Positions 6,386-45,730 of a DNA stretch of 64,000 bases are shown here, one piece after another. Source of the stretch: Selaginella moellendorffii (Eukaryota; Plantae; Lycopodiophyta); assembly GCF_000143415.4 (NCBI RefSeq), contig NW_003314293.1, forward strand, positions 651,763 through 715,762, read 5' to 3'. The notes below the pieces were generated by a model. It did no database searches, was not told the DNA's origin, and saw only the letters and a list, made by a program, of their open reading frames with translations. The translations under genes and the position numbers were made by a program. Every line of letters begins with the position of its first letter. The stretch's first letter is position 1.

Positions 6386-6587
6386 AGAAAATCAAGCTTA
6401 ATCGTCGCTAGATCTGGCCGAGAAGCGCGAGATCCTCGTGTGGATTCGCTAGTCCCAATCACCAGTATAGTAGCTCTAGACTAAAGGCACTGCGTTCTTG
6501 GTGTTTTGTCTTCTTCGTCGTTGTCAACTAAAGGATGTGATCGTCGTTCTATTGCTGTGCTAGGTCTTTTATTTCGTTGTGGGAGAC

Positions 6588-15567: not shown

Positions 15568-17059
15568 CTAACATGAAGCCTCAGAGAAACAGCAGAGGAA
15601 GTGTGTGTGTGCCACGATCCTTCCTACAAGTAGTTGTTTATCTTTCAGTAAAAGAATGTTGATGTTTATCTTAGCCCATAAGTTTTGAGTTGAGAGTGTC
15701 CACGGCTTGAAATGTGCCACCGCCTTCACTTTGCTGACAAGAAAAAGAGAGCAAACCATGTAAATGGCGTTCATTTGTACTTAGACTTACTGCGTAGAAA
15801 TTCACTGCCAGGAAGTTTGCATATCGATTTCCAGATGATTTCGCGCAAACGTCGAGCATTGCGAAAAGGGACTGGCCGTGATCTTTGCATTCCCTCGGTT
15901 CAAACGGAGTTGTGGGGAAATAGTTCTCAACGAAAAGTGAAACGGAGCGAGAAGCTAAAGGTGGCGATTCATCACGATTTCTACAACTCCCATTTTCCAT
16001 CCCATCGTCCCCATCTACACAAATCACAAGTTTAACAATGACTCCACAGGAAAAGAGATGGATTTGCTGCAAGCTTACATTGATTTTCAGACGTGTATCT
16101 CCATTGGTAAGCGATGCCTTCGGTGGCTTCTTTAGCCTGTGACGAGGTGAACACGAGCAATCTCTGGTTGCTTGCAATCATGTCCGCTAGAGTTGGCCAA
16201 TCTCCACCCGACTTTGGCATCTTTGAGACTGGGAACCACAACTTGTCAAGCCCGGCCGCCTTGAAGACGTTGGTCACACCATTTTGGGTGCGAACATAAT
16301 CTTCAATGAAGATGGTGATAACTTCTCTAGGATTTGCTGCTAGAAAAGCCTCAACCTCGCGCAGCGTCTCTACTGCCGGTTGCTAAAGGAAAGAAGGCAA
16401 GAAAAATGTAAAACAAAGGTCCAGAGGCAGCTTAGACTTACAAAAGCCGTGAAATCATAGCATATCCCTCCAAAAGAATGGCAGAGCCAAATATCATTTT
16501 TAAAGTCGTATAAATCCAGCATCAAACCCCTCACTCCATTCTGCATAGTGGCAAAAAACAAAAGCTTCAACATTTCAGAGGATATTGAGCGAACCTGGAG
16601 CTGACTCGTGACGGTGTCATCCTGGTTAGTGGGAGCAAATCTGGGGACTGGAAATCTTTGCTTCTCAGTTGAGATTGCAAAAGAATTATGGGTGGTAAGC
16701 CATGCATACTTGTTGAATGGCAGATCTGTTCGAGCCTTTGAAAAAGTAAAAATAAATGAAAGCGTTATGGAAGTTCTAGCTAGCCAGGAACGCGTAGAAT
16801 ACCAGCAGCGTTGCATTAGAGCGTATGCAAATGGGTTCTATGATTCCCGCGGCTGCGCAGGAGCTACAGTGAAGACCAGTGGCACAGTCCTCGTTATTGA
16901 AACATCTCTCTCCAATCTTGCAGGAAGGATAAAGATGGGAAAAGTTTGCATGAAAACGGATACATAGGATAGAACAATTACCTTGCATGAGTGATTTGAG
17001 CATGCTTGGGCGCCAAGGAGGGAGAGGAGGAGGACCAATGGCAGCATTTCCTCAGCCAT
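15568..17059 (-). CDS. PI-PLC X domain-containing secreted protein (At5g67130-like)
   Basis: Signal peptide, Cys-rich N-domain, LPFNKYAWLTTHNSFA, NGVRGLMLDLYDF, DWPTL..M..NQRLLVFTS and ANFLAVNFY. The 3' end is uncertain (stop at 15671, or a further exon to about 15568). Confidence 0.88.
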
Positions 17060-19890
17060 GAATTTGGTTCTAGGTTAACTCCCCCCTAGAAAAATGCCGT
17101 CGTTAGACTACACGACAATCATCTTGGACCAACAAACGAGGTTTTAATATGCTTTCTTAAATTTAATCTTAAAGAAAATATTCTTAGTATCTGCTATTTG
17201 TATTATAGATAAGTATTGGTATATTTCATAGACTTTACTTTCATACTTTAAATTCAATAATTATGCAATCTTTCCTTTCAGTTCTAAAATTAATTTCTGG
17301 GAGATTATTTGTTCTTAGCATTGAGTATCAAACTCATTAATTATCAGTTATACTTCATAGTTTAGTCCCAGTTTAGTCACAACTATTAGAAATTTTATCT
17401 TGGGTGCTATAAGAATTATTATAAAAATATACAATATTTTTGGTTTGTTTAAGCAAGACTTAGAATAAGTTTTAATATTCTAGGATTTTACCATTTAACA
17501 GTTTTTATTTATTTTATTAAATTTATATTTACAATTTATAAATGTTCCTAAATCCTTTCTAGTTTATTTTAGAAACTAAGTGTAATATGATTAATATTAT
17601 GTATATAAATTATAAATATGTTTAAGAGTTAAATTTTTGGGCTATAGTTAATGTTCCTTGTTTCTTACTCAAAATAAATTGTTATACATTGCAATGTTTA
17701 ATTTTCTTAATAGTAAGTGTTATTCTTACTTATTAATCTAATTGATCAAATAAAGTTTATAATTATAAGCATGTTGTAATTTATAAATACAAAATTAATC
17801 TTATTGCATATCAACCATTAGATGATAAAATAAAAAATAATATACTAGAAAGGGTTTTAAATAAATTATAAATACAAGATTAATCTAAATGAATAACAAC
17901 CATTAGATGGTAGCTAGAATATTGCTTAAGAAAACAAAAAATGCTGTTACATGGTTATTAATTATGAAATATACTAAACTCAATCCTTAGAAATGTGCAT
18001 ACTTGATTAACTCAAAAACCTTAGCTTATATACAACCCTTATCTATTAAAATCCCACTATTGGAAGCTATCAAGACTGGATGGCAAATAAATATAGCTCA
18101 TTTTGCCTATAATAGATTTGTACTAGAAATAAAAAATATTGCCTTATAAGTAGGCAAGGGAAGGCAAGTGAAGATAAGAGTCTTCATCTTTTTGCGGCAC
18201 ATTTACAAGTATTACACAACTTAAGAGAATCTCATGCCTCACATTGCCATTGAGCCACCACCTAATATCTCTCATAAGGGAGATAACTAGGGATGTGGAT
18301 GTAAAGGAAAATCTTGACAATACAAATTAAAGTAACAAAAATTCTCTTCTAAAAAAAACTTCCCTTTAGAAATGAAAATCCAAACTATGAGACCTCCAAG
18401 ATTCATTCCGCAAAAATCCAATGGCTAAGTATGCTACAAAAAAGCTAAATGCAGCAAGTACAGTGATAAAACACCACACCCAGATCAAGAACAGAGTTAT
18501 GACTTGTCTATGTCTATAGAGATAACTCTGATGCTGATACAAATCTCTTCAAGCATCGGGAAAGTGACGACACTAAACGAATGATGGATGTTGAAGTTGT
18601 GGAAGAAATTTCACAATTTATAGGCTATAAAGTCCAGCACACAATGCACTTACAAATGTTGCAAAACTATTGACTGTAGATACAACTAATGAGGCAAATT
18701 TAGGCCAAAAAGATCACGGCCAAGAAACTCAACAGAATAAAGAGGATGAGGCTAGTCTAAATGAACTAGAGGAGTACAAGCTAAGTCTTCTTGAGTCCAC
18801 CTATGCATTTGATAGTGACACACCCTTGGCTGATTAGTTTAACGAGATGAGGTAGCCACAACAGCAGTAGATACCGCAACAACACTACAAGGTCAAGGCT
18901 AATTGCACCTTCACTCACAGGACCACGAGTTAGTTGAGTGAGCCAATAGATGAAAGAGTTTGCTCAACACATCAAAAGAGGAGGCAATCAATCAATCGAC
19001 AAGCTAATGCAGCCGGTAGAAGACAAAGAAACAACAAAATACCATGTGCAAGTCTTGAGCTACTTCAAGATAATCACTAAGAAAGTGGATGAAATCATAG
19101 GCAAGCAAAATCATTAGTGCTACATAATCTAAGAACTCAAGAGTGCAATTCTAGCTTCCACATCCACCAATGTAAAGTGCATCAGACACCAAGAGTAGCG
19201 TATCAGTCACCAAGAGTAGTGCATCACTATGTCCAACCAGGAAAATTAGATCATACGTTAGGAATTTAACAATCTATGTTGAAGTGTTGAGCTTGTCACT
19301 ATAAAGACCAAGCTTAACAAATTAGAGTAGGATTTAGAGAATCTAATTGCCTAAGGACAGGTAGTAACTTTGTCATGGGGAGTGATGAAGAAGTAATGTT
19401 TTATCTTGTATATCATCTTAGGCAGAGCAAAAAAAGAAACTTTAGGCAAAATGAAGTTACGTTTAAGCTTAAACATCCAAAGAAGCTAGACTCAACCTAA
19501 GCAACACTTGTCATAAACAAGCGAGAAACAATTAGGAATGAATATAATATTTAGACATGCTAGAAAACTCACTATTATATGCATTTGCTTTGAAGTAATT
19601 ATCTTTTCTCCTGTTTATGATTATTTGTGCAAAATAGAGTTGAGAAAGTGATATGTGTTTATCTTTATTCATGCTTTTGGGGTTTTATAAGCAATTAAAA
19701 AGAACGACTTGAGAGACAATCTATATTGATTCAAATATAAAGGGAAAGGGCTCATGAATAAGAATGCACCCCTTTTCCAATTGATTAAAAATCTTAGGAT
19801 ATTTGAGGTTAAGTGTCTTTGTATTTGAATAGTATTAAGCTAAGTGACTTCTTGAGAAATCCAAATTCAGAAGCTTATAGGCTTGAAATT

Positions 19891-20040
19891 GAGTTCTCTT
19901 CTATTCTCTTCTCATTTTTCTTCTTCTTTTATTTCCTACATTCTTGTCTCTAATTGTTTGAGGTTGAGTTCTCTTCTATTTTTTTTTCTTTTTTTTTTCT
20001 TCTTCTTTTATTTCTTACATTCTTGTCTCTATTTGTTTGT
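19891..20040. repeat. Tandem duplication of a ~75-nt pyrimidine-rich unit
   Basis: gagttctcttctatt...ttcttcttcttttatttc.tacattcttgtctcta.ttgttt occurs twice consecutively. Confidence 0.75.
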
Positions 20041-23000
20041 CACTATTTTGTAGGCAAAGGCAACAATGCAAGTATAGGCAAAAAATGCCTTATTTAATGG
20101 GAAAAATATAAGTTGTCTCTAAGGTATTCTAGTTCTTAGAAAAATCAGTATAATAGCATATTAAATGAAGTTGGCAATAGGGTAAGAATCCACCTAATTT
20201 ATCATTTTTGTAAGTTGAAAATTATGCTTATAAAAAATGAATCTTACGTAGAGTCTTATAAATGTTAAAAGAAAGATAAGAGAATTGAACGAGCCCTAGA
20301 AAGTGTGACCAATCACTAGTGTGTCATCTTTGTAGTTGTGAGCTTGTTGCTATACTTAACATTGATTATATTAGCAAAGGTATAATTTGAGCATATATGT
20401 GGTCTAACATAATGTCGGTACTCCACCAAGATGTAATAGAGTTTATGCATAAACCTAAGCTAAACATAAAACAGGAAGCAATACAATAAATTGGAAGCCA
20501 ACCCAAACAAGAAGAAACATAACCAAATGTGGAAGTAAAGCAGATTATTAATATGCAAAATAAAATATAAATATATTTATTTATTAATTTTTAAAATATT
20601 TAAAACTAGGAGGTGGTAACTTAGGAGAAGATAAAGAATTTGATGAAGGTGATAGAAATTTTCTAGTACTTAGACAAATATAAGTGTTTATATCGAAATC
20701 ATCTTTATAAATTCTATGAAAATATGTAATTATAACCTTATATTTATTATAATACTTTAAATGTTGCACTCTTCACTAGATATATTAAAACTAATGCAAA
20801 AATAAAAAGTAAAATTGTAGAGTAAAAATGTTTTCTTTCCATGAATATAAACAAGGATACAAATGAAAATAAGAAGGAATATATAATATAGAACAAGTTA
20901 TTTGACTTAAAATATCAATAAAACATGAGATAAGATGTTTGAGCTCACTCAGTTTAGTTAATATTGTCTTCCACACTCATTATATATAACATATAGATAT
21001 TCAACAATGTTTATATTTTGTCATTATTAATATGATATGCACAAAGTAATCAAAAACAAAAGAACAGCTAACACAACTTATGTACTCCATAATTGCACTA
21101 TGACATTTATCCCCCTCTTTACTCACTTTGTGAGGAAATTGTGCTTGATACTAAAAATAATCTCTATAAATTCACTCCACTCCACCTTGCTTTAACTATG
21201 ACAAACCCTTGGAATATACTACTATATATATTATAGGATATTCTAGTATACATTTGGTGACCTCCATTTAGCCATATTTGACCTGGAGGAATCCAAAATC
21301 TCTAATGTGCACTCTTTATAGTGCCTTTTTATACTTCAACCAAGGATCGTCAAGTTATATGCATGGACTATTGTGAGTAAACTAGCAAGTTCTTGAGAAA
21401 GCCACTAGCTTGGAAGAGTCAAGGATGAGTTCTCCTTAGTAGAAGGTGACAATATGTGTTAGAAATCTGATACTCTAGTTTTGCAATCATTTGGTTCTAT
21501 ATTATTAATACTCTTGACAATGATTGTGTTTAGTTGCTCATTATTAGTCTTCTTTTTGTAAGACTTCTTCATAATCTAGACTCTATTTCACTAATATCTC
21601 CCTTTGGCAACAAGCTGGCTTGATTAAATCTCATTCTAGACTATATTTGGTGCAACCTCTAAGAGTGGGAGTGTTCTTGAGCACCTGTCTAATGATAGTG
21701 CATGGTCCACTCCAATCAACTTCTCTAAATTTCCCCTTTTGGAAAATCTCTATTGATAAACCTATATATGTTCATTAATTCTAAATCATGCCATAATAGA
21801 AGAAGCATGCCGGTCAAGGGAAAATTGGCTGAACGACTATGTGCAGACGCGAGAGAGAACTTGTTGAAGATGTTATTGCTATCGTTGCAAGAAAAATAGA
21901 GGGCTTTATTTATGTCATTACTTACACATGTTACTATAATTGTGTGTTGCTGCTGTCAATTCCCACCTTAGTCACAAGCCTCCAAACACACAATTAAGTT
22001 AAGAATTAACTTGAGACCTTTGATCCCCAAGAAGGCTCATGTGTGTGGTTGTGAGTGAGGATAAATTTGGCATTACTAGAATGAGCAAATGGATGTGCAT
22101 TAATAGAAGATTAGAGTACAATAGAGATAAGGATGGAGTTTGAGTGTTAACTCACCCCCTTAATTAGTCCTACATGATGGTAATCACCACTTCTTCCTAT
22201 TCCTAAGTCTGAAGGTTTAAGTCTTAAGACTCAGGATGATACTTCTAAATGCAAGGTTGATTTCCTATACTCCACTTTTCTCCCATGATTGAGTTGAGCT
22301 TCATCTCAAAGCTCTCACTGCTCCATGGCATCAAAGTGTTTTGTTGCTATTGCAACTCTAGAGAGCTCATTCTTGAACTTGTTGAGCTTCTGTTAAAACT
22401 TGTCATAGTTGTTATTGTGATCACTCTTGTTGTTATCATCCATGATAATGGGTGCCTACTTTGCTTTGAGCTTTCAAATCTCATTGCAAAACTCTACATT
22501 CTCCTTGGAGAGTTCCTTGTTATGTGGCATATATAGATACCTAGAAAGCTGTATCTTGAATGCTCCTCTTGAGCTAGAGAATATTGCTCTGGATTTTTAT
22601 GAGCTTTGCATCGAGGGGCTGGTAGACAATGGCATTGATCATAGCTTGGACTCTGTCTCACATGAAAACACCCATTGGATAGATGTGAGAAAGACTCGCA
22701 AAATCTGCTAGCATCAAGCATTTGTGAGATAGGCTGGAGATGTTGTATTTTGTCCACAAACTAGAGAAATGTTTAGCTTAAGATCCAGTATAGAATATCA
22801 GGCTTATAGTGTCACTCCTACTCAAGATGCTCTCGACTGTGGTGTTTGCGGTGATGTGGCATGTTATTGATGTTAGTGTCGAGAGCTGATTTGGTGGTGT
22901 TGCTGTGTTCAGTGGAGATGCTAGAGGCTGCTCCTGTTGGGTTGTGTTGATGTTACACTCCTCTGGCTGTGATGATTATAAGTTTGGAACCTCCTTCTTG

Positions 23001-26000
23001 GCATTCATCTCATTCTTGGCATCATCTAGCAAGGTGGTTATGTGTTTAGGATCTTGTTCCTAAGTCTTCTCTTGAATTTCCTTGCCTTGTGCTTCATGAT
23101 CTTTGTTGTTGGTTGTTTCCTGAACAGCTTTTCTGCTCTTGCATGTAGATGTTGCCTTGGCATTGTGTGTGGGTGGTATTATCTCAATTGATGCTCTTTA
23201 TCTCTTTGTTGGTGGAGTTAATGTTGGTGATGACGACTCTTCTAGATCTTCTTCTAACTTGCTTTCATTATCTTTATCTCCTTTGCCATCATCATAGAGG
23301 AGGATGAAATCTTCTTGTCTTTTTGAAGTGCATTCCCTTTTTCTTCATATTTGTGGTGTCTTTGTGTTTGTGGATTTGCTCGGTTTTTTGTTGCTATCAT
23401 ATGTTGTTATCTCTTTGATTTGTAGTGGAATGGTGGTATCATGTGTATGAGTGTTGCAATGTAGGGAAGTGCAAGTGTTTCACATTTGAGGCCATCTTGG
23501 ATCATTGTCATTGTGACATGGAGTTCCTTGATGAGCTTATCACGAAGGTAGTTTGCAATTTCGACTTGTATCTTCCACTACAAGTCACTGTAGAGAATTA
23601 CAATTGCTTTGCCGGTGAAAGTCATGGACTTCCACATCTCTAGTGTCGAGATTAAAAACTTGAGTTGCAGCTTGGCTTTGATCATTTATAGAGAATTTCC
23701 ACTATTATAGTTCTTAAGTACCTTGATACACTTCAATAGAATCCCCTTCGTGGGAATTGATATCACTTGCTCTCCACCAGTGGGAAGTTTGAATGCCCAT
23801 GTGAAGTATTTAGTGCTTAAGACAAATTTGTAGTTGTTGGTGTGCATGAAGTCTTCATTTTATGCTGGAAGAATCTTCTTAGCAATATTGATCTCATACT
23901 ACTTTTCCATGATTTTGGAGAATTCATAAAGCCCAACTTCATGTAGCCAAGTGTTGAGCTCTTCAATCCTCTTTCAAGTAGGATTGCAAGGTGAGAGGAG
24001 ACTCACCTTGATTATGCTGACTACCTTGGGATAGAAGATAAACTTCTTGGTGATGCTGCATGCTTATGTGCCCTGTTTTCCCATTTTGTTTTCTTGATCT
24101 CAGTGTGAAATATTGTAGTCGAAGGCATTAGGGTTAAGGATTTCACCATTTCATCAAATTTGACTATATGTTAAGTGGTTTGAGTTCAATTCTCTAGCTT
24201 GAATTTTCTCTTTATTGATGTTGTTTTCTTGTTGGACCTTGTTTTCTCTTGATCTTGTATACATTTGTTGTTGAATCTTAGTGGATTGTGATGATTATTG
24301 ATTATAATAGTGTCTTTTCTTGATTTCTTGAACTTGGAGTTTGAAAATTTTATTTGAGTTGAGTTTTCAAGCTTGATTCTTCTTGGAGTTATTTTCTTTT
24401 GTTTGATTGTTGAAATTTTCTTTGAGTTGATTTCTTGAGTTTGGATCTTGAGCTTTATTTCTTAAAATTTTTTTAAGTCGATTTGCCTTTTTATTGGAGT
24501 CTTGAATTTTGTGTTATAATTTCTTGAATTCTTGAGTGTCATGCTTGTGATTTTATTCAATGTTGGATTCTTGAGTCTCAAAGTTGTACTCTTCACGTCT
24601 TCCAAGATCATTGTTAATAAAATTGGTGCTGATCAATCAATATTTATTAAGCTTGTTAAGGTTAACAGTTTAGAGATATTTGTTGTCAAGTGTTGTAATT
24701 ACTACCATTCATAAAGCTTTAACTTCACATCATCCCTCCTCTCAGAAAAATGAAAGGTAATTAGGGTTCTTTTGTTGATAGGTTGAGATTTGAAAAAACA
24801 TGAGGAAGAAGCACTGGTGAATTTATAGATAGTGCAACTAAGTTGTTGAATGTCATATTAACCTTTATAAACTTGTGGTTCAACTTACCACAATATTTGA
24901 TATAGTCCCTTTCCTTGAGCAAAGAGCCTCTTAAACAAAACACATACCATAAATTGGGAAAATAAACTAGCACTAAATCATTTATTTTACTTTATAAATG
25001 GACAATAATGAGAGTTGTAGTCTCTTTATTGTCTCACTTGAACCAATAGAAGAACCAATGGAAGAATGCTTATTAAATATTGATCTTAAAACTTAGTATT
25101 ATAGCTTATGGGAATTGCACTTAACCTGTATTGACTAACACAAAAAAAATAACTAAGGATCTTTTGTTATAAAACTGAGTTTGAAAAATAAACACTAGAT
25201 GAACTAATGCCAAATTTATTCATTTAAGGTCCCTTCACTACTTATATGACTCTTTATTTTTTGGAAGAATCTCACAAAAACTTTCCACTATAGTAGCACC
25301 AATAAAATGTTGTTGATGCCAATGCTTCCATCTAAAAAATAAAGGATGTTAATCAAGGAAATGCTAACAATGTTAATATTGTTTAGCTAACGTAGGAGCA
25401 AACATCATAGCTACAACCATATTCTTACCCTTAAACATGGGCAACAATACCATTAACCTCTATTAGAACAAAAAAATTTCCTCCAGAAAATGGAGTTGAA
25501 AAGTGATGTTTTTATAGTATTGTGTTAGTTGAAGAATATTGTTAAAGATAGTTAGGGTAGGTGCATTACAAAATCTTGATAAAATGTTAACCATAACATA
25601 TTCAACTTGATATGTTTTAACATATTTGGCTTTGCATGAAATAAGAGACTTTAAAAGTGAACATTAAATTGCATAAGTAACTTGAGTGGCCCTTAACAAA
25701 GACAATGCAATTGGTAAAAGGCATTATCACAGTTGTCAGCATATCCAAATGCACACTTGAAAACGTTCAGGAAAAAGCTCTAATTTGCATAAATAATTAC
25801 ATTCAAACTATTATACCATTGCAATACTATCCCTTAAATATGTGGGAAACTTGCATAGACACTAGATATTATCCCAAAAATGATAGTTGTCAATCATTAC
25901 AAAGTGATTGAACCAATAGTACACATTATCCTTAAGATTCCCATTAAAAAAATCCAATTATATATGCAGCAAAAATAAAAGGAATTGCACCACATGTTAT

Positions 26001-31779: not shown

Positions 31780-33720
31780 ACTACCCCAAGATGGATGCTG
31801 CGACATTGAAGTGGGAAGCTAGCACATGAGAGAATTGCGAGGAGCAAATCCTTTACCTTGCAAATCTTGTTGTATGGCAAGTGCAGGAGCATGGACGAGG
31901 CAAAGGCAGTGTTCCCCAATGATTTATGTTGGTCGTAGCATATGCCCAAAACAAGCATCTTTGTGAGGCCCGGTTTCCCATAGGAAGAATGCCGCGGCCA
32001 AGCGTGGTCGCGTTTACGACAACCATAGCCACTTTTCCAGCAAATCCGGTTTGACCATGCAAGAGTCATGCTGGATCAAATGCCGCAGCTCGACGTCGTG
32101 ACCTGGACCATGATGATCGTTGTGAATGCGGATTTGGCAGCGGCAAGAGATGTCTTCAATCGAATGCCGCAGCGGAATGTGGGTCGTGGACAGCGACTGT
32201 GTCGGCTCTCGCGCAAGCCGGATCTTATCGAGACCACATATGTTTTCAAGTGGGACACATGTCGAACTTCATATTAGTCCGCTTAAACAAGGCGACCTTG
32301 TTCTCAGCTGGAAACGGAGAGGATGGCTCTGAATTAGTCCCCTGACATAGGTTCCTTAAAACCTTCATGTGACCTTGTTTATAGCAACGCGATTTTTACA
32401 GATGTGCCCGCCCGAGATCATCAGACAGCCCGGTCTAAGCTTTGTTCCGGGCCATGAAAACGTAAGATCACGTCACCACCAAGCGTCAGCGTCCTGGTTA
32501 AACAGCATTTCAAAGAAACAAACGAACTTGTAGTTACAAGGCGAGCAAACTATCCTTGTTATTCCCACTCAACTTAGGGAAGGCTGCAGGATGGCTACAG
32601 CAACTATGACTACGAGATCGAAAGCCGCGAGGTGGAATGTGGCGCGGGAAGCTATGGGAGTGTGAGGCTTGGCGTGTACAGGGAACAGGCAGTGGCAGTG
32701 ACGAGCAACANNNNNNNNNNNNNNNNNNNNNNNNNNNNNNNNNNNNNNNNNNNNNNNNNNNNNNNNNNNNNNNNNNNNNNNNNNNNNNNNNNNNNNNNNN
32801 NNNNNNNNNNAAAGAGAGATCGAAGTGATGCGCTCACTGAAAAGTGAGTTCCGCGTTCCTCGGCCGCGTCCAAAGGGGCTGGAAAAGATATTTGATCGTA
32901 TGCACGTAATTTCTGGACAATGATGACCGAAGCTTATTTCCAGCAAAGCCGGTTTGATCAAGGAAGAGTTTTGCTAGATCAGATACCGCAGCTCGACCGC
33001 GTCGTGGCCTGGACTGCGATGATCGTCGCAAATGCACAAGAGATCTCTTCGATGGAATGCCGCAGCGTGATGTGGTGTCCTGGACTACAATGGAGGAAGC
33101 TATTCGACTCGATGCCACGGGAATCCCACATCTCTGTAAATGTCTCCCACCAAAGAATATTACATAGGCTTTGAAAGAGCAAGACTTAACTTTTGATTTC
33201 ACACTCCAGTTCTTGGCTTCTGTGAACTCGGAGGATGGCTCTGAACTGTCAAGTAAAACCTCCATGATCTTGTCGACAGCAGCACAATTGTTACTAATGT
33301 GGCCGAGTGCAATCTTATACACTTTGTCCGGGATCACCAGGCGTTATAGCGTCCTGGTTAAACACAGGAAAGCCAGCGGGATAAAGTATCTTGGACTATG
33401 GAGCATGGTCATCATTCCCATGGGCAACGAATGACTACGCGATCGCAAGCCGCGAGGTGGATCCAATGTGGTGCGGGAAGCTATGGCAGTGTGAGGCTAG
33501 GCGTGTACAGGTTTCAGAGAGCAGCATCCGAAGAGAAATCGAAGTGATGCGGTCACTCAAAGGTGAGTTGCTGAGCTCGTAGGGCGTGGTGATTGCCAGG
33601 GATTTGTGTGGCAGTCTTTTTAGTCTGCATGGCAGAGGCATCGCTCACGAGGATGTCAAGAGTGACGCTCTGAACTTCGGGATGAGGGCCAAGATGTGTG
33701 ACTTTGGCACCGCCAGGCTC
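31780..33720 (+). pseudogene. Mosaic of decayed fragments: two units of PPR piece (+), FtsH2 C-terminal piece (-) and kinase N-lobe piece (+)
   Basis: PPR pieces match the 35208 gene (MPQLDVVTWT). Kinase pieces match the 43781 gene (ECGAGSYGSVRLGVY; IAHEDVKSD..CDFGTAR). FtsH-like YKIALGHISNN..DKIMEVLL on the minus strand. Stops and frameshifts throughout. Confidence 0.8.
32711..32810. other. Assembly gap (100 N)
   Basis: Run of n. Confidence 1.
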
Positions 33721-37235: not shown

Positions 37236-39419
37236 ATGTTGAGGAATGCACTGCGCAAGCAGTTCGTCCTCCTCGGTAAGAAGCCTCCTCTCGATCTTTT
37301 CTCCACGATCTTGGCTTCTCGATCTCCGGCACTCCGGTCTCAGCACAGCGAACCCACCCTCCTTCCGGATCTCCAGTCGAGCAGCGAACAGGAAGCGCTG
37401 GACCTCGTCCGCCAGTGCTGCGAGCTGGGATCTCTCGACCAGGCAAAGCGTCTCCACGCCTCCATCCTCGAGAAGGGCGTCTCCAGCGCCAAGCTCTTCT
37501 CCAAGTACCTCATCCGGATGTACGCGCAGTGTGGCAGCCTTGAGGACGCGCAGCGCGCATTCGATGGCATCGCTCACCCGGGCGTGGTCTCCTGGACCGA
37601 GCTCGTCAAGGCGTATGCCCACACCGGGCATCTTGGCGAAGCATTTCGCTGCTTTCGCTGGATGCTCCTCGCGGGCACCCGGCCGGATCTAGTCCTCCTC
37701 TCGCAGCTCCTCCTCCACCAGGAGCCTCCGCTCGGCCTGGAAGAAGCCAAGCTCCTCGACGCGATCGTCTGCTCGTCCGGGTACGCCAGAGATTTGCTCC
37801 TGGGAACTTCGCTCCTGGTCTGGTATGGGCGATGCGGGCGGCTCGAGGAGAGCAAGGCCGTCTTCTCCAGGATGGAGGGCCGCGACGCCGCTGCCTGGAA
37901 CGCGATGATCTGGAGCGCCATTCTCAGCGGCGAGAAGAAGGAGGCATTGACACTCTTCCAGGCGATGAAGGACGAGGGCGTTGCTCCGGAGGGTGTGGAC
38001 TACTGGGCGGCGCTCAAGGCCTGCGAGCTTGTCTCGGAGGTGAGAGCTCTCCACGCCGAGATCTCCTCGAGGAAGATGGAGGGCGATCCCGATGTGGCCT
38101 CGGCGCTCATCGACTGCTACGGACAGCTTGGTGAGCTCGAGGTGGCGGAGCAGCTCCTCTTCACTTTCGGTCTCGAGGAGGCCCCGTGCTGGACGAGCTT
38201 ACTCGTCGCGTACGCTCGCCACGGATACCACAGCCGGGTGATCCAAGTCTTCCACGAGATGCAGCACAGGCGCTTGACGGCCAACTTCGCCACCTTCGCC
38301 GCGGTGCTCGACGCCTGCGCCGGGCTGGGAGCTCTCGTCGAGGGGAGAGTCATCCACCGGCGAGTCGTCGAGGTCGAGAAGCTCCCCATCGCTGGAACTC
38401 TGGCGAGGTCCCTCGTCAGCATGTATGCCAAGTGTGGAGAGCTCGGGGAGGCGTGGAGCGTCTTTGAGGGTGTCACCGGCAAGCGGGAGCTCAGGCTCTG
38501 GAACACTTGCATCGACGCGTTCGCGGCTCACGGGCAGGGGCACTCGGTGCTCCAGCTCTTCCAGCTGATGCAGCAAGAGGGAGTGAAGCCGGATCAAACC
38601 ACCTTCTCGAGGCTGCTATTCGTCTGCTGCTACGTTGGTCTCATCGAAGCTGGCTATGCTTTCTTCGCCTTGATGATCACTGACCACTTGCTATCTCCTA
38701 GCCTGGAGAACTACGCCTGCATGGTCGATCTTCTGGGACGAGCTGGAAACCTAGATGGAGCTCAAAAACTTATCACCAGAACTCCATATCAATCCAGCCC
38801 CGTTCTCTGGAGGAGCTTGCTAGCGGCTTGTGGGATCCAAGGTGATGTCGAGCGAGGAAAACGAGCCGCTGTTCAGATCTTTACTTTGGATCCAACCATC
38901 GCGGAGGTATACGTGGTGCTGGCGAGAATCTACGAGAGCACTGCGAAACCGGCCATCGCTCGAAAGGTAAAGCTGCTGATGAAGGAGCGAGATGTAAGCT
39001 CGGAGCTAGCCCGGAGCTGGATCCAGATCAGTGGTGTCATTCACAGCTTCACCACTGGAGATCAAACTCATCCCCAAACCGAGGAGATATACGCTGCTCT
39101 CCAGAAGCTCGAGGCTGATTATCCGGCCTGGGAGGCTGCCGGGACGAGCAACAACGACTTGACCATGCACGACGTCGATGAGGAGGATGAAAACTCGGTT
39201 CACAGCGAGAAGCTGGCTCTTGTCGTTGGCCTGATGAACTCGCGGTTCCAGGAGAATGAGACGCCGGTGGTGGTGTTTAAGAACAAGAGGATGTGCCGTG
39301 AGTGCCACTCTTTCTTTGCGACGATATCGAAGGTGGCCGCTCGTGACATTGTCGTGCGGGACAGCTCCAGATTTCATTGGTTTAGACAGTGTTCTTGTTC
39401 CTGTGGGGATTACTGGTGA
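37236..39419 (+). CDS. PLS-E-DYW PPR protein (organellar C-to-U editing factor), intronless
   Basis: Transit-peptide-like N-terminus, PLS repeats, HSEKLA (HxE), KNKRMCRECH (CxxC), VRDSSRFH and terminal CSCGDYW. Confidence 0.95.
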   Translation: MLRNALRKQFVLLGKKPPLDLFSTILASRSPALRSQHSEPTLLPDLQSSSEQEALDLVRQCCELGSLDQAKRLHASILEKGVSSAKLFSKYLIRMYAQCGSLEDAQRAFDGIAHPGVVSWTELVKAYAHTGHLGEAFRCFRWMLLAGTRPDLVLLSQLLLHQEPPLGLEEAKLLDAIVCSSGYARDLLLGTSLLVWYGRCGRLEESKAVFSRMEGRDAAAWNAMIWSAILSGEKKEALTLFQAMKDEGVAPEGVDYWAALKACELVSEVRALHAEISSRKMEGDPDVASALIDCYGQLGELEVAEQLLFTFGLEEAPCWTSLLVAYARHGYHSRVIQVFHEMQHRRLTANFATFAAVLDACAGLGALVEGRVIHRRVVEVEKLPIAGTLARSLVSMYAKCGELGEAWSVFEGVTGKRELRLWNTCIDAFAAHGQGHSVLQLFQLMQQEGVKPDQTTFSRLLFVCCYVGLIEAGYAFFALMITDHLLSPSLENYACMVDLLGRAGNLDGAQKLITRTPYQSSPVLWRSLLAACGIQGDVERGKRAAVQIFTLDPTIAEVYVVLARIYESTAKPAIARKVKLLMKERDVSSELARSWIQISGVIHSFTTGDQTHPQTEEIYAALQKLEADYPAWEAAGTSNNDLTMHDVDEEDENSVHSEKLALVVGLMNSRFQENETPVVVFKNKRMCRECHSFFATISKVAARDIVVRDSSRFHWFRQCSCSCGDYW

Positions 39420-39519
39420 TAATAACTTTTTTCCTCATGAAAACTACAAACACCTAGCACTGAAACATCAAAGCTCATCACATAGTTTGCAAATTCTAAC
39501 CTTCCATATGGTAGAGATG

Positions 39520-40878
39520 TTAAATTAGCCTGTCGTAGACTTCCTGGGCAAATGGCCTGTTGCTAGCATCGTTGTCCATGCATTCTCGGATACAGGCAGC
39601 GACATCGTCAGTGTAAGAGCTGAGAAGGCTGAGTATGCTTTCCCGATGAGACACTGCCGGATCACTGCCAAAGACTTCGGTGTTGGACAAGAGAAAGGAC
39701 TTCCCGAGCTTGAGCTCCGCCATCACCACCCCCATCGAGTAGATGTCACACTCAAAGCTGTAGCGGCCACCAGCAATGCGCTCCGGGGCCTGGTAAATCC
39801 TCTTGCGGAGCTCGTAGTGTGGATCATTCCCCGACCTCTCCCTCTCGCTCATTTCCAGGGGATCTGCGAGGCGCGCTAGGAGGAACCCCGCGAGCTTGAC
39901 TTGCAAGCTTGCGGCTTGCTGCTGGGCGACGATGAGAATGTTGTTGGAGCTGATGCTCTCGTGCACAATGTGGCACCTGTGAAGATCGGCTACTGCTGCT
40001 GCCAGGCTCAGAAGCACACTGTTGGTGGCACCGGGATCTAGTCCTCCCAGTTGCTGAAAACTGTTAGCAATCTGGAATTCCAGGGTGGTGACTGCGGACT
40101 TGGAGTGGCATCCTTCCACCCGGCTCATAATATGATAGCTTCCATCCTGTTCGATCATCTTCTCCATCTTCACCAGGCCTAGCTCACTTGCTGGTATGTC
40201 CTGGTAGACGAGGATCAGCCTTCCAATTCGATTCAGCCTGCAAGCTTTGACCTTGGGCGTCGTGCCAACGGGAATGGTTTCAACGAAAAACACAGACCCA
40301 TCATCTGCCTCAAGGAGCCGGTCTTGGTCCTGCGGATTATAACTGGGAAGGCCCGCCATGCTTCGGGAGTAGACATTGCTGCTGATGAGATCTTGTTTTC
40401 TGATGGGCTTGAGATTCCTGGGATCCATGATCTTCGAGATAACTTTCCTGGAGTTACTCATGCCATCTCTATCTTTGTCCTCATTGTTACCAATATCAAC
40501 AATGCCGCCCTGTGCTTGCTTGGACAAGCTGACCAATATGTGTACAATGTTGACCAATTTCTCGATCTTGTCTAGCTGCTCGCGGACCCTCTTTGCTACA
40601 AACATGGATTCGTCGAGCACCTTTTGGAGCTTACACAGCCGATTGTAAATGCGCTGGTTGCAGAGCAACAAACCTTGTTTTTGCTCGTCAGAGATCCCCT
40701 TTTGGGTTTCAGCCACTGACCGGAGCTCCTTGTAGATCTCCACAGCAAGCACCATCCGAGCGTAGTCTTCCTGGTCGAGTCTCTCCAACAAACCCTTCAC
40801 ACGATTCAAGAGGTTAATGATGCTATCGATGGAGGCGACTAGGCCAACAACACCCGCCACAACACTGAAAGGATCCAT
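39520..40878 (-). CDS. HeLo/HELL-like helical N-domain plus pseudokinase (MLKL-like architecture), 452 aa, intronless
   Basis: N-terminus MDPFSVVAGVVGLV.. followed by about 120 aa of amphipathic helices. Kinase C-lobe with HESISSNNIL (no catalytic Asp), QVKLAGFL (GFL for DFG), YQAPE, DIYSMGVVMAEL and RP. Confidence 0.8.
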   Translation of the reverse strand: MDPFSVVAGVVGLVASIDSIINLLNRVKGLLERLDQEDYARMVLAVEIYKELRSVAETQKGISDEQKQGLLLCNQRIYNRLCKLQKVLDESMFVAKRVREQLDKIEKLVNIVHILVSLSKQAQGGIVDIGNNEDKDRDGMSNSRKVISKIMDPRNLKPIRKQDLISSNVYSRSMAGLPSYNPQDQDRLLEADDGSVFFVETIPVGTTPKVKACRLNRIGRLILVYQDIPASELGLVKMEKMIEQDGSYHIMSRVEGCHSKSAVTTLEFQIANSFQQLGGLDPGATNSVLLSLAAAVADLHRCHIVHESISSNNILIVAQQQAASLQVKLAGFLLARLADPLEMSERERSGNDPHYELRKRIYQAPERIAGGRYSFECDIYSMGVVMAELKLGKSFLLSNTEVFGSDPAVSHRESILSLLSSYTDDVAACIRECMDNDASNRPFAQEVYDRLI

Positions 40879-40907
40879 GAAGGCACTGTTCAGCTCACAC
40901 TTTATCC

Positions 40908-43781
40908 CTAGTGTTTTTCCTTCTCCAGTGACTCCTTCCAACTTCTGGCCATCTCAACATCTCGTTCAAGATCTTTGTCCCCAAGGAACTTCCTCCACTT
41001 TTCGACCCCTTGGGTGTCACCCAGGGCGTAGCAGTAGCGGAAGCAGACCGCAGCAGATTGGCGGTGGCGTTTCTTCTCGGCAGCCATGGCAAAAAAGTTG
41101 TAGGCTTGCATGGACACTTGCTTCAGTCCGGTTCTGGAGGCCACTAGCATTCCCATGTTAAAGAGGCTTTCAGCGTCAAGCTTGTCAGCAGACTTGGAAA
41201 CAAGCTCGATCAGCTCCTCCCCGTCTTTGTCTTGGTAACCAGCACCCGCTTGGTAGCACACTTGTGGATGCAAGCTCCAGAGTGATCGCCGAAACCAGTA
41301 CTCGGCCTCGCTTGTGTACTGACCTTTCTTCTGCACGAGTAAGAACGCAAGCATCGACGCTGCTCTTTCTGCACCATGGAGCAAAGCCTGTTTCAGTAGC
41401 TTCTCGGCCCCAGCCAAATCTCCTCGATAACGCAGCATGCCCGCCAGCTCCACCATGGCTAGCGAATTGCCGAGATCCACGGCTCGTTGCAGCAGCTGGA
41501 GCTTGCGTTCCCTGCCCACGCCCCCGCAAATGGCAAGCTGCAGCATTGCGGTGTCGTTGCCAGCTGAAACTCCCTGCTCCCACAGGCGGACTGCCATGTC
41601 ATTGTCTCCATTCTGGGAGAACTCCATCGCTTGCATGCTCAGGGCCTCGGCATCGCCCGCTTCGGCGGCAGCTCGCCACCATTCCATTGCCTTGCGTTCA
41701 TCTTGGAGCCTCCTTCGATAGAGAGCACCGATTTTTGTGACGACACTTGGCTCCATGTACTGCCTTTTCTCTGCGAGTATCTGGTGCCACTCGTCTGAAT
41801 GGAATTTGGCCGACATATTGAAGAGAGCGTTCATAGCCTTGATGCTGACATCTCTTGATTGCCTGAATATCCTCATTACCACTTCTTCTTCTCCCAGCTC
41901 GAGCAGACCATCCATAAGATCATACTCTACTGTCGACTTGTGACGATTCATTCGAAAAAACAGCAGTAGCTCGTCATCGGAAGTCGAGTTGAACCTCTTG
42001 CTCAATAAAGTTCTGAGCCTTATGCAAATAGAGTTCAGCGCGAGACGTCCTTTCCCTTCCCGGTGAATCCTTGTATTGAGGATTAAAGCTTTCATGCAGC
42101 TCAACCTGGCCCAGCCGGAAGTCATCCTCTCTAAATTAGCGGCTGCAGTGTAGAAGTCAATTGCATCCGTGTTCTCACATCTCAGCTTGTACAAGTCGCC
42201 AATGAACTCAAGCAGTGCGCCGTTTCTCGACTCAGCCAAGAGCCCTGCCTTGTCAATCGTGCCTTTGACAACACTCCTGAGGATTCTCCCCAAGAGGCTC
42301 CCACCCTCGACGCTCCTCTCCAGAAACTCCATCTCTTTGGCAGGAAGCTCGCGGTAACCCGGGTTGACGGCCATGTAGAAGAGTGCTAGAAGTGCCTGTG
42401 CGTGTGCATATCCCGTCTTGGCTGCTTTCAAGAGAAGATCGAGTACGTTCCTGTGGTTGCCATTGACCGTGGGAGCAAACTCAAGACAAGAGCTAAACAT
42501 TCCGCTCCGCAAACTATATACGTTGGCAAACTCCACTTGAGCATACGCGTTACCCCGGCTAGAAAGCTCTGCTAGATGCTGTATTGCATCACCAATTCCC
42601 ATCCTGGTTTGTATCATTGCCAAGTAGTAGTCCACAAGGGCGCTCATCAACATGTTGACACCGATCTCGTCTTCGAGCATCACAAGGCAGTCCTTGAACA
42701 GTTCCAATGCTGCCTCCCAGTTTCTTTGGCATCCGTAGCCATGGAAGTTCATGATACCCAGAAAGAGCTTGGCCACTGCGCTTTCAGACGTGGTAAACAC
42801 GTCAAATGCCTCCTCGTTTCGTTGTTGATAGAAAAGCATCCTGCCCTGGCGGATGAGGTCGGCGTTGTCGCCTTCTTCGTTCTCAAGGAAAGTGTCGGTC
42901 CAATAACACGCCAAGTTGACCCTCTCCGCCTCCCCAATGGCATGATCAAGCAGACCTTTAAAGCTATCGAAATCACGATCATCGCTGGAGTAAAGATGGT
43001 CAAGAGCATCAAGGACCTCATCGCAGCTGGGCCTTTCGAGTGGGCAGGAAGCCAAACACTGGATTACGATTTCAACGTCGCCGAGGAGCTCTTGCAGCAC
43101 AAGGCCAAGGCTGTAGATGTCAGAGGCCAAGCGATGGTACATACTGCCAGGAGGAGCAGCCCGTTTCTCGGGTGCCATGAAAGCCGGTGTGCCGAGTACC
43201 TCCCCAAAGTCATTGTCGCCCATCTGTCTTGCGGTGCCAAAGTCACACAGCTTGGCCCTCAGCCCAAAGTCAAGCAACACATTGTCACTCTTGACATCCT
43301 CGTGAGCAATGCCTCTACCGTGCAGGCTGCAAAGGCCGCCACACAAATCCCTGGCAATCACCACCTTGAGACGGCCCGACAAGCTTTGGCCGCTCGCATC
43401 CAGCAACGCCCTGAGCGATAAGTTGTAAGCGAGCTCCATGACAATGCAGCGATCATCATCCAGCCCCGTTTGGACGCGGCCGAGAAACTGGACGACGCGG
43501 GACTCACCTTTGAGTGACCGCATCACTTCGACCTCTCTTCGGATGCTGCTCTCTGAAACACCTCGGTTGTAGCTCTTGACTGCCACTGCTTGTCCCCTGT
43601 ATACGCCTAGCCTCACACTGCCATAGCTTCCCGCGCCACATTCCACCTCGCGGCTATCGATCTCGTAGTCATTGATATCTTCGTTGCTGTAGCCTTCCCG
43701 CAGCAGTACTATTGGGGATGGAGATGCTGAGCAGTCCATAGCTCTTAGTTGATTGCGTTGTAGGCTAGTTATATTCCCCAT
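40908..43781 (-). CDS. Non-RD TKL-type protein kinase fused to SEL1-like repeats, 957 aa, intronless
   Basis: GAGSYGSV, VAVK, RREVEVM, HEDVKSDNVLL, DFG and GTPAFMAPE. SEL1-like repeats include LLKAAKTGYAHAQALLA, AMEWWRAAAEAGDAEAL and LQRAVDLGNSLAMVELA. Confidence 0.9.
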   Translation of the reverse strand: MGNITSLQRNQLRAMDCSASPSPIVLLREGYSNEDINDYEIDSREVECGAGSYGSVRLGVYRGQAVAVKSYNRGVSESSIRREVEVMRSLKGESRVVQFLGRVQTGLDDDRCIVMELAYNLSLRALLDASGQSLSGRLKVVIARDLCGGLCSLHGRGIAHEDVKSDNVLLDFGLRAKLCDFGTARQMGDNDFGEVLGTPAFMAPEKRAAPPGSMYHRLASDIYSLGLVLQELLGDVEIVIQCLASCPLERPSCDEVLDALDHLYSSDDRDFDSFKGLLDHAIGEAERVNLACYWTDTFLENEEGDNADLIRQGRMLFYQQRNEEAFDVFTTSESAVAKLFLGIMNFHGYGCQRNWEAALELFKDCLVMLEDEIGVNMLMSALVDYYLAMIQTRMGIGDAIQHLAELSSRGNAYAQVEFANVYSLRSGMFSSCLEFAPTVNGNHRNVLDLLLKAAKTGYAHAQALLALFYMAVNPGYRELPAKEMEFLERSVEGGSLLGRILRSVVKGTIDKAGLLAESRNGALLEFIGDLYKLRCENTDAIDFYTAAANLERMTSGWARLSCMKALILNTRIHREGKGRLALNSICIRLRTLLSKRFNSTSDDELLLFFRMNRHKSTVEYDLMDGLLELGEEEVVMRIFRQSRDVSIKAMNALFNMSAKFHSDEWHQILAEKRQYMEPSVVTKIGALYRRRLQDERKAMEWWRAAAEAGDAEALSMQAMEFSQNGDNDMAVRLWEQGVSAGNDTAMLQLAICGGVGRERKLQLLQRAVDLGNSLAMVELAGMLRYRGDLAGAEKLLKQALLHGAERAASMLAFLLVQKKGQYTSEAEYWFRRSLWSLHPQVCYQAGAGYQDKDGEELIELVSKSADKLDAESLFNMGMLVASRTGLKQVSMQAYNFFAMAAEKKRHRQSAAVCFRYCYALGDTQGVEKWRKFLGDKDLERDVEMARSWKESLEKEKH

Positions 43782-44069
43782 ACCATCGTGAGAGATGGTT
43801 CGTTGCGGCTGGAATCTCTGCGAATTCGGAGAGCATGACTCCCTGTTGACTTGGCTCGCTTAGCTCGCTTAGCCATGTCCTTTGTCATGAGCCCTTGTTA
43901 CAACTATAGCAGTGAGCAATTTCATGCTTGCATCAGCCTTGGATTCAAAACATGGAGTTCTGAATAACATAAAAAATTTAAATCTTGCTCCTTGAAGCTT
44001 ATCAAGGCCGATGCCAAAGCAAATTTTATAACTATAAATGTCTTTGAATCCCACCTCTCTGCACATGTC

Positions 44070-45730
44070 TGGTCACGACGTCGAGCTGCGTTTTTTATCC
44101 ATCTCGATCAAACCGAAACTGTGGAAGTCGTCGTCAAGGAACAAACATCTCTCGAGCCACTCGTAAAGCTCCGTTCATGGCAAGTCTTTGAATGATCGTG
44201 GTTCCAGGCCACCACATTCCACTCGGGCATTGATCAGCAACCATTGATATGGAATATCAATAACGTAGTTATTGATAACTTCGTTGCTATAGCCTTCTTG
44301 CAGCAATGGGGATGGAGATGATGCAGAATCTATAGCCGTACCTAACAACAAGGACGCGTTGTACCCATTCCAGCGGGAAAGATGGTTTGTGATTGTACCT
44401 TTGGAATCAAAGGATGAGGCAATCTGTGGGCCAAGAAAATTTAATTTCCAACTTTTCTTTTTGTCATTATTTGATCCGAGTCATGCAACATGCAATCTGT
44501 TGCCAAGCAGGCAATATCATCCATTCATTCATATACTATTTACCTTGTAACGGCCTCCAAGAAGCATGAGACCAATGGAATTAAATATGCCGTGTTGAAA
44601 ATTGCTGTAGCTGTTTGTCGTCGGCATCTATGATACACAGTAAACTGCGAGTCCAAGGAAAGACTGGAGTTGAGGAGAGAATCACGGCAATGTCACTAGC
44701 ATGCGCAATCTGAATGTTGCCAGGCAAAAGTCCACAGGTGGAGGGGTAAAGCAGACATACTACTCCAAATGTTGGCCCTGGCTTTAGCAGAATTTGCAAT
44801 TTACAAATACAGGACAATTAACAATTGTCATCCTCGAATTTAGCCGTCTCCGTTTGGAGATTCTAGCACGGTGAAGGAGATGGGGTGGAGCAGTTGAAAA
44901 CATGGACAGAGATAATCTTGAAACACTGCACACCGAACTGATAGACCAACTAGAGTTATGGACATGGCAAGCAATGGTGTTCTTTTGTATTGCATCAGCC
45001 TGGGCCAGGGGTTTGGTGGTGGCGTGATCTTACGTAATGATGGCCTAGAACTCCATGCTCGAGAAGGTTAGAGTGGGGTGTCGATCTTGGATGGTCACAA
45101 TCCTGAAACTTTTAATTGAGAAAGAAACCATAAGAGGGGATGAATTTAGAGCCATCCTCTCTGAGTTCACAAAGATTCCAACCGAGAACAAGGTCACCTT
45201 GCGTAAACGGACTCGGTTGCAAGCGTATACAATATTCTCTAGTGGGAGACATGTATAGTATAGACCACTGGAAGACATATGTAGTTAGAGATTCGTGATG
45301 GCAAGCTTCAGGGCCTTGATAAGATCTCTGGCTTGGGCTGAGCACCGACACCATTGCAGTCCACGACACCACAGCCCGCTGCGGCATATGATTGAAGAGA
45401 TCTCTTGTCGATTCCAAATCTCCGCTCTCGGCATTTGCAACAATCATTGCGGTCCAGGTGACAACGGCAAGCTGCGGCATTTTACCCAGCAAAGCAAGGC
45501 CCTTGCTTGATCAAACCGGCTTTGAGCTTCAATCATCGTCACCCAGGAAATCACGTCCTTGACTGGCATACGCTCAAACATGTCTCGAGTTCCTCGTAAA
45601 TCTCCGTTCATGGCAAGTGCCTGACTGATCGTGTTCCAGGCCACCACATTCCACTTCCGGCACAATGCTAAATCTTCTTGGGACTCTTTAAGCCTTTGCA
45701 CAAGCGGCTATGGTGGCCTTAAACGCGATC
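44070..45730 (-). pseudogene. Mosaic of decayed PPR (-), kinase N-terminal (-) and FtsH2 C-terminal (+) fragments
   Basis: PPR pieces at 44070-44235 and 45300-45720. Kinase piece SASSPSPLLQEGYSNEVINNYVID at about 44250-44337. FtsH piece MMA*NSMLEK..LIEKETIRGDEFRAILSEFTKIPTENKV at 45010-45195. Confidence 0.8.

Follow-up and report, generated by a model that had tools for sequence, protein, structure and literature searches.

A 64,000-nucleotide (nt) stretch of the genome of the lycophyte Selaginella moellendorffii (contig NW_003314293.1, positions 651,763 to 715,762 of the forward strand), here called the window, carries on its minus strand a gene for a 452-amino acid (aa) protein with what appears to be the architecture of MLKL: a predicted four-helix N-terminal domain with a hydrophobic head, a linker and a dead pseudokinase of the tyrosine kinase-like (TKL) type. 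The protein probably, if by no means assuredly, serves in defence as a latent executioner that is released by a kinase. The open reading frame (ORF) is a genuine S. moellendorffii gene that stands alone and is expressed. Its product belongs to what may be called an MLKL-like family of putative descent and function, every step of activation being inferred. The features of the gene are as follows.

39520..40878, minus strand: complete intronless coding sequence of the 452-aa MLKL-like pseudokinase, from the ORF list and translation; stop codon at 39520-39522.
40813..40878, minus strand: hydrophobic N-terminal segment, residues 1-22 (MDPFSVVAGVVGLVASIDSIIN), rich in small residues; candidate membrane-inserting helix.
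40510..40830, minus strand: N-domain with four helices (17-32, 37-58, 64-89 and 95-123), residues 17-123, as predicted by AlphaFold2 (AF2).
40327..40509, minus strand: linker, residues 124-184, with short helices at 142-151 and 161-166; AF2 predicted local distance difference test score (pLDDT) <50; possible brace.
39523..40326, minus strand: pseudokinase domain, residues 185-452, TKL/IRAK-like fold.
40279..40281, minus strand: Glu200 at the beta3 (VAIK) Lys position, invariant in the family, from the alignment with 14 ordinary kinases.
39934..39963, minus strand: catalytic-loop remnant HESISSNNIL, residues 306-315, in which the HRD Asp is replaced by Ser, as is the Lys two residues later.
39871..39903, minus strand: QVKLAGFLLAR, residues 326-336, with DFG changed to GFL; aligns with QVKLAGFELSK of MLKL.
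39847..39849, minus strand: Ser344, an activation-loop Ser that is invariant in the columns of the family alignment and is followed by acidic residues; candidate phospho-switch.

The kinase domain, judged by its residues, is a clear pseudokinase and should be catalytically dead. The family motifs were read from the alignment with ordinary kinases. Besides the Glu at the beta3 Lys position, the family has a hydrophobic residue at the alpha-C Glu position and no Gly-loop (GxGxxG). In the catalytic loop the pattern is H-[EK]-[SN]-I-[SNG]-S, and AGF, TGF, SRF or AGL is found at the DFG position. PER of the APE motif, the CDIYSxG block and the Arg of subdomain XI have been retained. Nucleotide binding is unlikely, because the beta3 Lys is changed to Glu and the alpha-C Glu to a hydrophobic residue. 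The idea that beta3 and alpha-C had exchanged their Lys and Glu charges was considered and dropped, since in the alignment the alpha-C Glu position is taken by a hydrophobic residue instead of an Arg. Pfam recognizes only the kinase profile, from profile position 61 (residues 236-448, E 2.7e-16).

Which kinases does this domain resemble? The best matches of the family profile in the PDB are mouse MLKL (4m68, 8e-19; 4btf, 2e-18), followed by STK33 (2e-17) and again MLKL (6vbz, 3e-17); MLKL scores 71.2 bits and the next protein 66.6. With residues 337-452, a part that holds neither the catalytic loop nor the DFG block, the top three matches are all MLKL (39.9, 39.3 and 36.1 bits), and STK33 (33.3), BRAF (32.5) and IRAK4 (32.2) lie below. 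As MLKL is still at the top with the degenerate motifs removed, the likeness exceeds common motif decay. No chain named as a plant MLKL is present among the best 60 matches of either search. HMMER places H-R-N-I-S-S-S-S-F-L of mouse MLKL opposite HESISSNNIL, and rat and horse chains with H-x-N-I-S-S-S-S-F-L; QVKLAGF is matched likewise. The first-pass annotation of this stretch, made from the letters alone, had quoted three strings, all of which are present (the N-terminal one, MDPFSVVAGVVGLVAS, as residues 1-16), and was right that the Gly-loop and VAIK are missing and that the HRD Asp and DFG are lost. Its further claim, that the degeneration follows the pattern of MLKL, agrees with the MLKL motifs found opposite the query.

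The N-terminal domain is assigned, with moderate confidence, to the four-helix domains of the HeLo, HeLo-like and MLKL four-helix bundle (4HB) kind. The AF2 prediction was made for the full-length protein with a 20-sequence family alignment, and family insertions and deletions sit in the loops of the predicted domain. An AF2 model from the single sequence had a pLDDT of 40 and was rejected as unusable. Residues 1-22 form a segment whose hydrophobicity is transmembrane-like and that is conserved across the family alignment. In each of the four lineages, the hydrophobicity of the whole protein peaks at residues 3-25, with the top 19-residue window (Kyte-Doolittle mean 1.57-2.11) beginning at residue 3-9. 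In the linker, K161 and L164 are invariant in the family alignment.

Comparisons by protein language model and by fold add to this. The language-model neighbours of residues 1-135 are ascomycete clusters of HeLo (PF14479), PigL_N and SesA (PF17107), with scores of 0.87-0.92; PigL_N is presumably the former Helo_like_N, PF17111. The queries were the N-domains of Selaginella, moss and fern, which are ~20% identical to one another, and all gave HeLo/PigL_N/SesA clusters. In a fold search of the ESM Atlas with the whole model, the top two matches are ascomycete kinase clusters, one HeLo+DUF7580 and the other DUF7580, which span query residues 5-452 and 9-452 with template modelling (TM) scores of 0.57 and 0.58; by the calibration of the tool itself, Atlas fold matches are leads.

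Relatives of the protein are few. An exhaustive phmmer search of 1.84 billion representative proteins (cut-off E<=0.001) gave 2005 matches, almost all of them to the kinase C-lobe only. Matches from N- to C-terminus are P0001, a 432-aa protein with 45% identity that is encoded on a transcript-like, monocistronic 1.85-kb contig from run SRR4210093 with its own CT-rich leader, and P0122, which is PNR37260.1 of Physcomitrium patens (427 aa). P0105 is also a full-length relative, of which the best-matching stretch covers query residues 189-428 only; P0105 and P0151 are neighbouring genes of the fern Adiantum nelumboides. The Adiantum proteins MCO5591060.1 and MCO5591058.1 (JAKNSL020007543.1; locus 6001-7308) are near-identical and carry locus tags two apart, and the family-profile search found a third copy on another contig. 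The near-identical adjacent copies and the third copy point to a recent expansion of the family in Adiantum. The Adiantum homologue is an intronless single ORF, and the moss, fern and P0001 homologues are all stand-alone proteins of 409-436 aa.

Outside the family, the nearest named matches are no ordinary plant kinases but multi-kinase proteins from Amoebozoa and saprolegnian oomycetes; the named ones in the top 20 of the single-sequence search add only a green alga and an arachnid to these two groups. Ten top matches with long N-terminal regions were considered as HeLo fusions and rejected, as they are tandem or response-regulator kinases. Word-indexed homologue searches returned nothing for the whole protein or for residues 1-190 and one extra Adiantum paralogue for the family profile. 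A metagenome scan gave generic kinases only, and a hidden Markov model of the N-domain found no extra member among the 163 proteins collected. In the literature searched, no paper was found that names the Selaginella or Physcomitrium accessions. By sequence, this is a small family, known to date from spikemosses, one moss and one fern, and it is separate from the seed-plant MLKL family.

Is the protein an executioner or a scaffold? The helices at the N-terminus might serve only as a membrane anchor or a dimerisation coiled coil, the protein might be an adaptor without death activity, and its likeness to MLKL might come from convergent TKL decay. This alternative is possible, if unlikely. It would explain why there is no sequence match to HeLo, MLKL_N or RPW8, and it agrees with the single-sequence AF2 model, which has just two long helices. 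The TKL consensus has, for example, HRDLKSxNILL as its catalytic loop and VKIxDFGLA as its DFG block; the motifs seen here are only 2-3 substitutions away, hence a likeness of motifs to MLKL is cheap. A wide structure-alignment search likewise gives IRAK, receptor-like kinases (RLK) and RAF as structural neighbours of the kinase domain, tied with MLKL. A plain scaffold would not, however, lead one to expect that three divergent N-domains all reach the HeLo superfamily in language-model features, that HeLo-kinase proteins head the Atlas fold matches or that MLKL stays at the top of the PDB ranking when the decayed motifs are left out. The conserved hydrophobic first helix, as in HET-S (PMC3531502), also speaks for an executioner.

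A number of observations weigh against the executioner reading all the same. Confidence in the AF2 N-domain is modest (pLDDT 60-75, and 31 for residues 1-15). With <170 shared features, the language-model scores of 0.90-0.92 count as leads on that tool's calibration, and the aligned length of the Atlas HeLo-kinases (309-315) is little above the 301-304 of unrelated multi-domain kinases. Pfam has no HeLo, MLKL_N or RPW8 match at E<=1 for the 452-aa protein and is empty at E<=10 for five family N-domains, PF14479, PF17111 and PF17107 included. The sole PDB match of the N-domain family profile is a de novo four-helix design (E 0.003), and the PDB fold matches (Foldseek, VIA-align wide and a second look) all fall on the kinase domain and none on the N-domain. 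The lead of MLKL in the PDB sequence ranking is only 5-7 bits, human MLKL stands lower there than rodent MLKL, and vertebrate MLKL keeps the beta3 Lys where the Selaginella family has Glu. Two further points concern the kinase-repeat gene upstream, described below: the 6 kb before the Adiantum homologue contain no such ORF, and the 115 nt leader upstream of the P0001 ORF in its contig has no such neighbour. PDB sequence searches with residues 1-40, with residues 1-135 and with an N-lobe/linker profile gave chance-level matches only, with no MLKL among those of the N-domain. For the HET-S-like N-terminal helix proposed in the first-pass annotation, hydrophobicity and language-model neighbours are in favour, and no Pfam match to HeLo, MLKL_N or RPW8 and no PDB sequence match came forward; four helices, the number in the bundle that it foresaw, are what AF2 predicts, at the modest confidence given above.

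The coding sequence begins at the first ATG and, on translation, runs for 452 codons without an internal stop. An exact look-up of the protein found no match in the sequence collection, because it is not annotated in its 452-aa form. GenBank models join it to the gene upstream, and two more features are needed here.

40879..40907, minus strand: spacer from the upstream TAG (40908-40910) to the pseudokinase ATG, read from the sequence and crossed by RNA reads.
40908..43781, minus strand: ORF of an upstream 957-aa kinase with a helical tail of tetratricopeptide repeat (TPR)/Sel1-like repeats (Pfam Pkinase 4e-32, weak TPR/Sel1).

The spacer measures 29 nt from the listed end of the upstream ORF, with 26 nt between the upstream stop codon and the pseudokinase ATG. 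EFJ22078.1 (1365 aa) fuses the 957-aa ORF to the 452-aa ORF, with the upstream stop and codons 1-28 spliced out. EFJ22079.1, a partial model of 243 aa, leaps from the kinase domain of the upstream ORF to just before the ATG of the 452-aa ORF, skips the entire repeat region and has, in addition, mini-introns of 27-45 nt. Both gene models look wrong: two stranded RNA sequencing (RNA-seq) runs of S. moellendorffii, followed over 39300-43900, have no splice joint anywhere in that region, so the splices are unsupported. A 47-nt in-frame intron that would link both ORFs was considered as well and rejected, with 0 supporting RNA reads. The ORF might still be the C-terminal part of one kinase-Sel1-pseudokinase protein, since a GenBank model of it exists, the two ORFs share a strand and lie so close together, and the spacer is bridged by RNA reads. 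We find this barely credible. The reads cover the proposed intron and have no joint, the 28 codons left out by the model form the N-terminal block that is best conserved among the relatives, the moss, fern and P0001 homologues stand alone and the RNA depth climbs at the ATG.

What is transcribed? First mates fall almost all on the plus strand, which means minus-strand RNA over the pseudokinase ORF, the correct strand. Depth is 10-23x on this ORF vs 1-6x on the upstream kinase-repeat ORF, and the rise, 3-4 fold, falls in the bin that holds the pseudokinase ATG. We infer that most pseudokinase transcripts start just upstream of the ATG, within the end of the upstream ORF. RNA reads span the spacer and coverage of the upstream ORF is continuous with the gene downstream; RNA of the kinase-repeat gene probably reads through into the pseudokinase gene. 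About half of the RNA reads come with a 9-nt insertion in the spacer at 40893 (TTCTAGCTA, RNA strand), a substitution at 40879, which is position -1 of the pseudokinase ATG, and many further allelic differences, and these represent the other haplotype. The insertion accounts for the loose read ends at 40893, which read GTGTGAG+TTCTAGCTA+CTGAACAG on the RNA strand.

The coding sequence has 17 listed allelic variants (9 synonymous and 8 non-synonymous), with a ratio of non-synonymous to synonymous polymorphism (pN/pS) of ~0.25 and with no stop or indel among them. Stranded RNA-seq with no joints, this pN/pS and full-length relatives in moss and fern together make the ORF more than a chance one. 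A decaying, non-functional kinase pseudogene with a leftover ORF is suggested by the loss of all catalytic residues and by JGI models that made the ORF an exon of another gene. Such an origin is most improbable, as the same substitutions are kept in moss, spikemoss and fern, alleles differ by neither stops nor indels at the low pN/pS given and expression is above that of the upstream neighbour.

If the protein is indeed a latent executioner active at membranes, or else a device of immune signalling, how might it act? At rest, the pseudokinase and linker would keep the helical bundle closed. A signal would then free the bundle, most simply the phosphorylation of Ser344 by an active kinase, and the kinase-repeat protein encoded 26 nt upstream is a candidate activator. 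Release would be followed by oligomerisation and entry of the first helix into the membrane, where it could, in defence, trigger an ion flux or kill the cell. The upstream kinase has intact catalytic motifs (Gly-loop GAGSYGSV, VAVK, HED and DFG), starts with MGNITS, a possible N-myristoylation site, and has ~650 aa of helical repeats after the kinase domain. A more far-reaching possibility, which we consider rather doubtful, is that the kinase-repeat protein and the HeLo-like pseudokinase constitute a lycophyte death switch of the RIPK3-MLKL kind, expressed in part dicistronically, and that the non-seed-plant family is ancient and was shared or exchanged with fungi rather than with animal or seed-plant MLKLs.

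The surroundings of these genes may be described briefly. Partial tblastn copies of the N-terminal/kinase part of the upstream kinase are present at 32584-33717 (plus strand) and 44211-44336 (minus strand), in short pieces of 46-80% identity; they look like fragments or diverged paralogues of it. At 42967-43001, 33-35 nt of the upstream ORF are found inside abundant transcripts (contigs of ~1.5 kb, depth up to 430), and the four RNA-seq runs all have loose ends to either side of it; this is probably a conserved kinase subdomain common to a highly expressed paralogue. On the other side, at 37236-39419 (plus strand), an intronless gene for a 727-aa pentatricopeptide repeat (PPR) protein that carries the domains E, E+ and DYW deaminase is convergent with the pseudokinase gene. 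The two stop codons are ~100 nt apart, and the 3' ends must therefore nearly touch or overlap. A long AT-rich stretch occupies 16001-26000, with a guanine-cytosine content of 0.30-0.40 vs ~0.5 elsewhere in the window.

MLKL-type executioners have been described in animals and seed plants and HeLo bundles in fungi, and whether these are related or convergent is debated. The intronless HeLo-like pseudokinase family of mosses, spikemosses and ferns would add a lineage at the base of the land plants, one that in its kinase domain scores closest to rodent MLKL and in its whole-protein shape comes nearest to the fungal HeLo-kinases. Were the rather doubtful death switch, with a family shared or exchanged with fungi, to prove true, executioner four-helix bundles gated by kinases would be a recurrent or ancestral immune device of eukaryotes. 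The 26-nt tandem with a motif-intact kinase offers a concrete candidate for a kinase-triggered switch, and Physcomitrium, a tractable model, allows direct tests of the family. Apart from this, the RNA-seq result corrects the two GenBank gene models.

How does the protein compare with known systems? Its domain order, as predicted, is like that of vertebrate MLKL, the executioner of necroptosis (4HB, brace and pseudokinase), and its length is similar (452 aa vs 469 aa for the full-length mouse chain 4btf). Both are dead kinases in which the Asp of DFG is changed to Gly and the HRD Asp is lost, and in the HMMER alignments the catalytic-loop and QVKLAGF strings are near-identical to those of rodent MLKL. 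In contrast, the Selaginella protein is without an MLKL_N Pfam match, its linker is poorly predicted where MLKL has a clear two-helix brace, its first helix is far more hydrophobic and no partner kinase that carries the RHIM (the homotypic interaction motif of RIP) is known. As there is no N-domain profile match and the beta3 Lys is lost, common descent with vertebrate MLKL can only be called putative.

The seed-plant MLKLs AtMLKL1-3 have a Ser-rich extension after the pseudokinase, ~4 exons and a five-helix brace, and animal and plant MLKLs have been argued to be convergent (Mahdi et al., 10.1101/681015). Like them, the Selaginella protein comes from a plant, has a predicted helical bundle at its N-terminus with a pseudokinase behind it, and may plausibly act in immunity. 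It differs in having no Ser-rich tail (the Pfam kinase match reaches residue 448-451 of 452), no introns and a linker of ~60 aa in place of the five-helix brace. In the published NLRtracker table, S. moellendorffii v1.0 and P. patens v3.3 each have 0 MLKL, although the v1.0 Selaginella model of this gene is mis-fused and lacks residues 1-28. With no Ser-rich tail, no introns, a short linker and no MLKL in NLRtracker, the protein is not of the seed-plant type and falls outside that family in the definition of Mahdi et al. (10.1101/681015). The same table lists MLKL-PKin proteins in Sphagnum, Azolla and Salvinia; the first-pass premise, by which the plant MLKLs described come from seed plants, is thus outdated, though the family described here is separate from them.

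RPW8, CC-R and the coiled-coil domains of receptors with nucleotide-binding and leucine-rich repeat parts (NLR) are also four-helix bundle executioners of plants, and their first helix is functional. To our eyes, the N-terminal string of the Selaginella protein resembles RPW8, which we take as a lead only. The protein differs in having no RPW8 Pfam match and in the fusion of its bundle to a pseudokinase, not to NB-ARC.

The HeLo, HeLo-like and SesA domains of fungi are treated as one superfamily with the MLKL 4HB (PMC9815663). In HET-S, residues 1-34 form a hydrophobic N-terminal transmembrane segment that is buried in the soluble fold and expelled on activation (PMC3531502), and the hydrophobic N-terminal helix of the Selaginella protein is similar. 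The differences are several: there is no PF14479, PF17111 or PF17107 match, an amyloid prion-forming motif and an NLR partner are both missing, and the N-domain is much shorter than HET-S HeLo residues 1-227 (PMC3531502). A search of the literature found no paper that describes fungal HeLo-kinase proteins. With the best whole-model fold matches in the Atlas (TM 0.57-0.58), it is nevertheless the fungal HeLo/DUF7580-kinase proteins that, on the predicted model, appear to be the closest overall look-alikes of the Selaginella pseudokinase.

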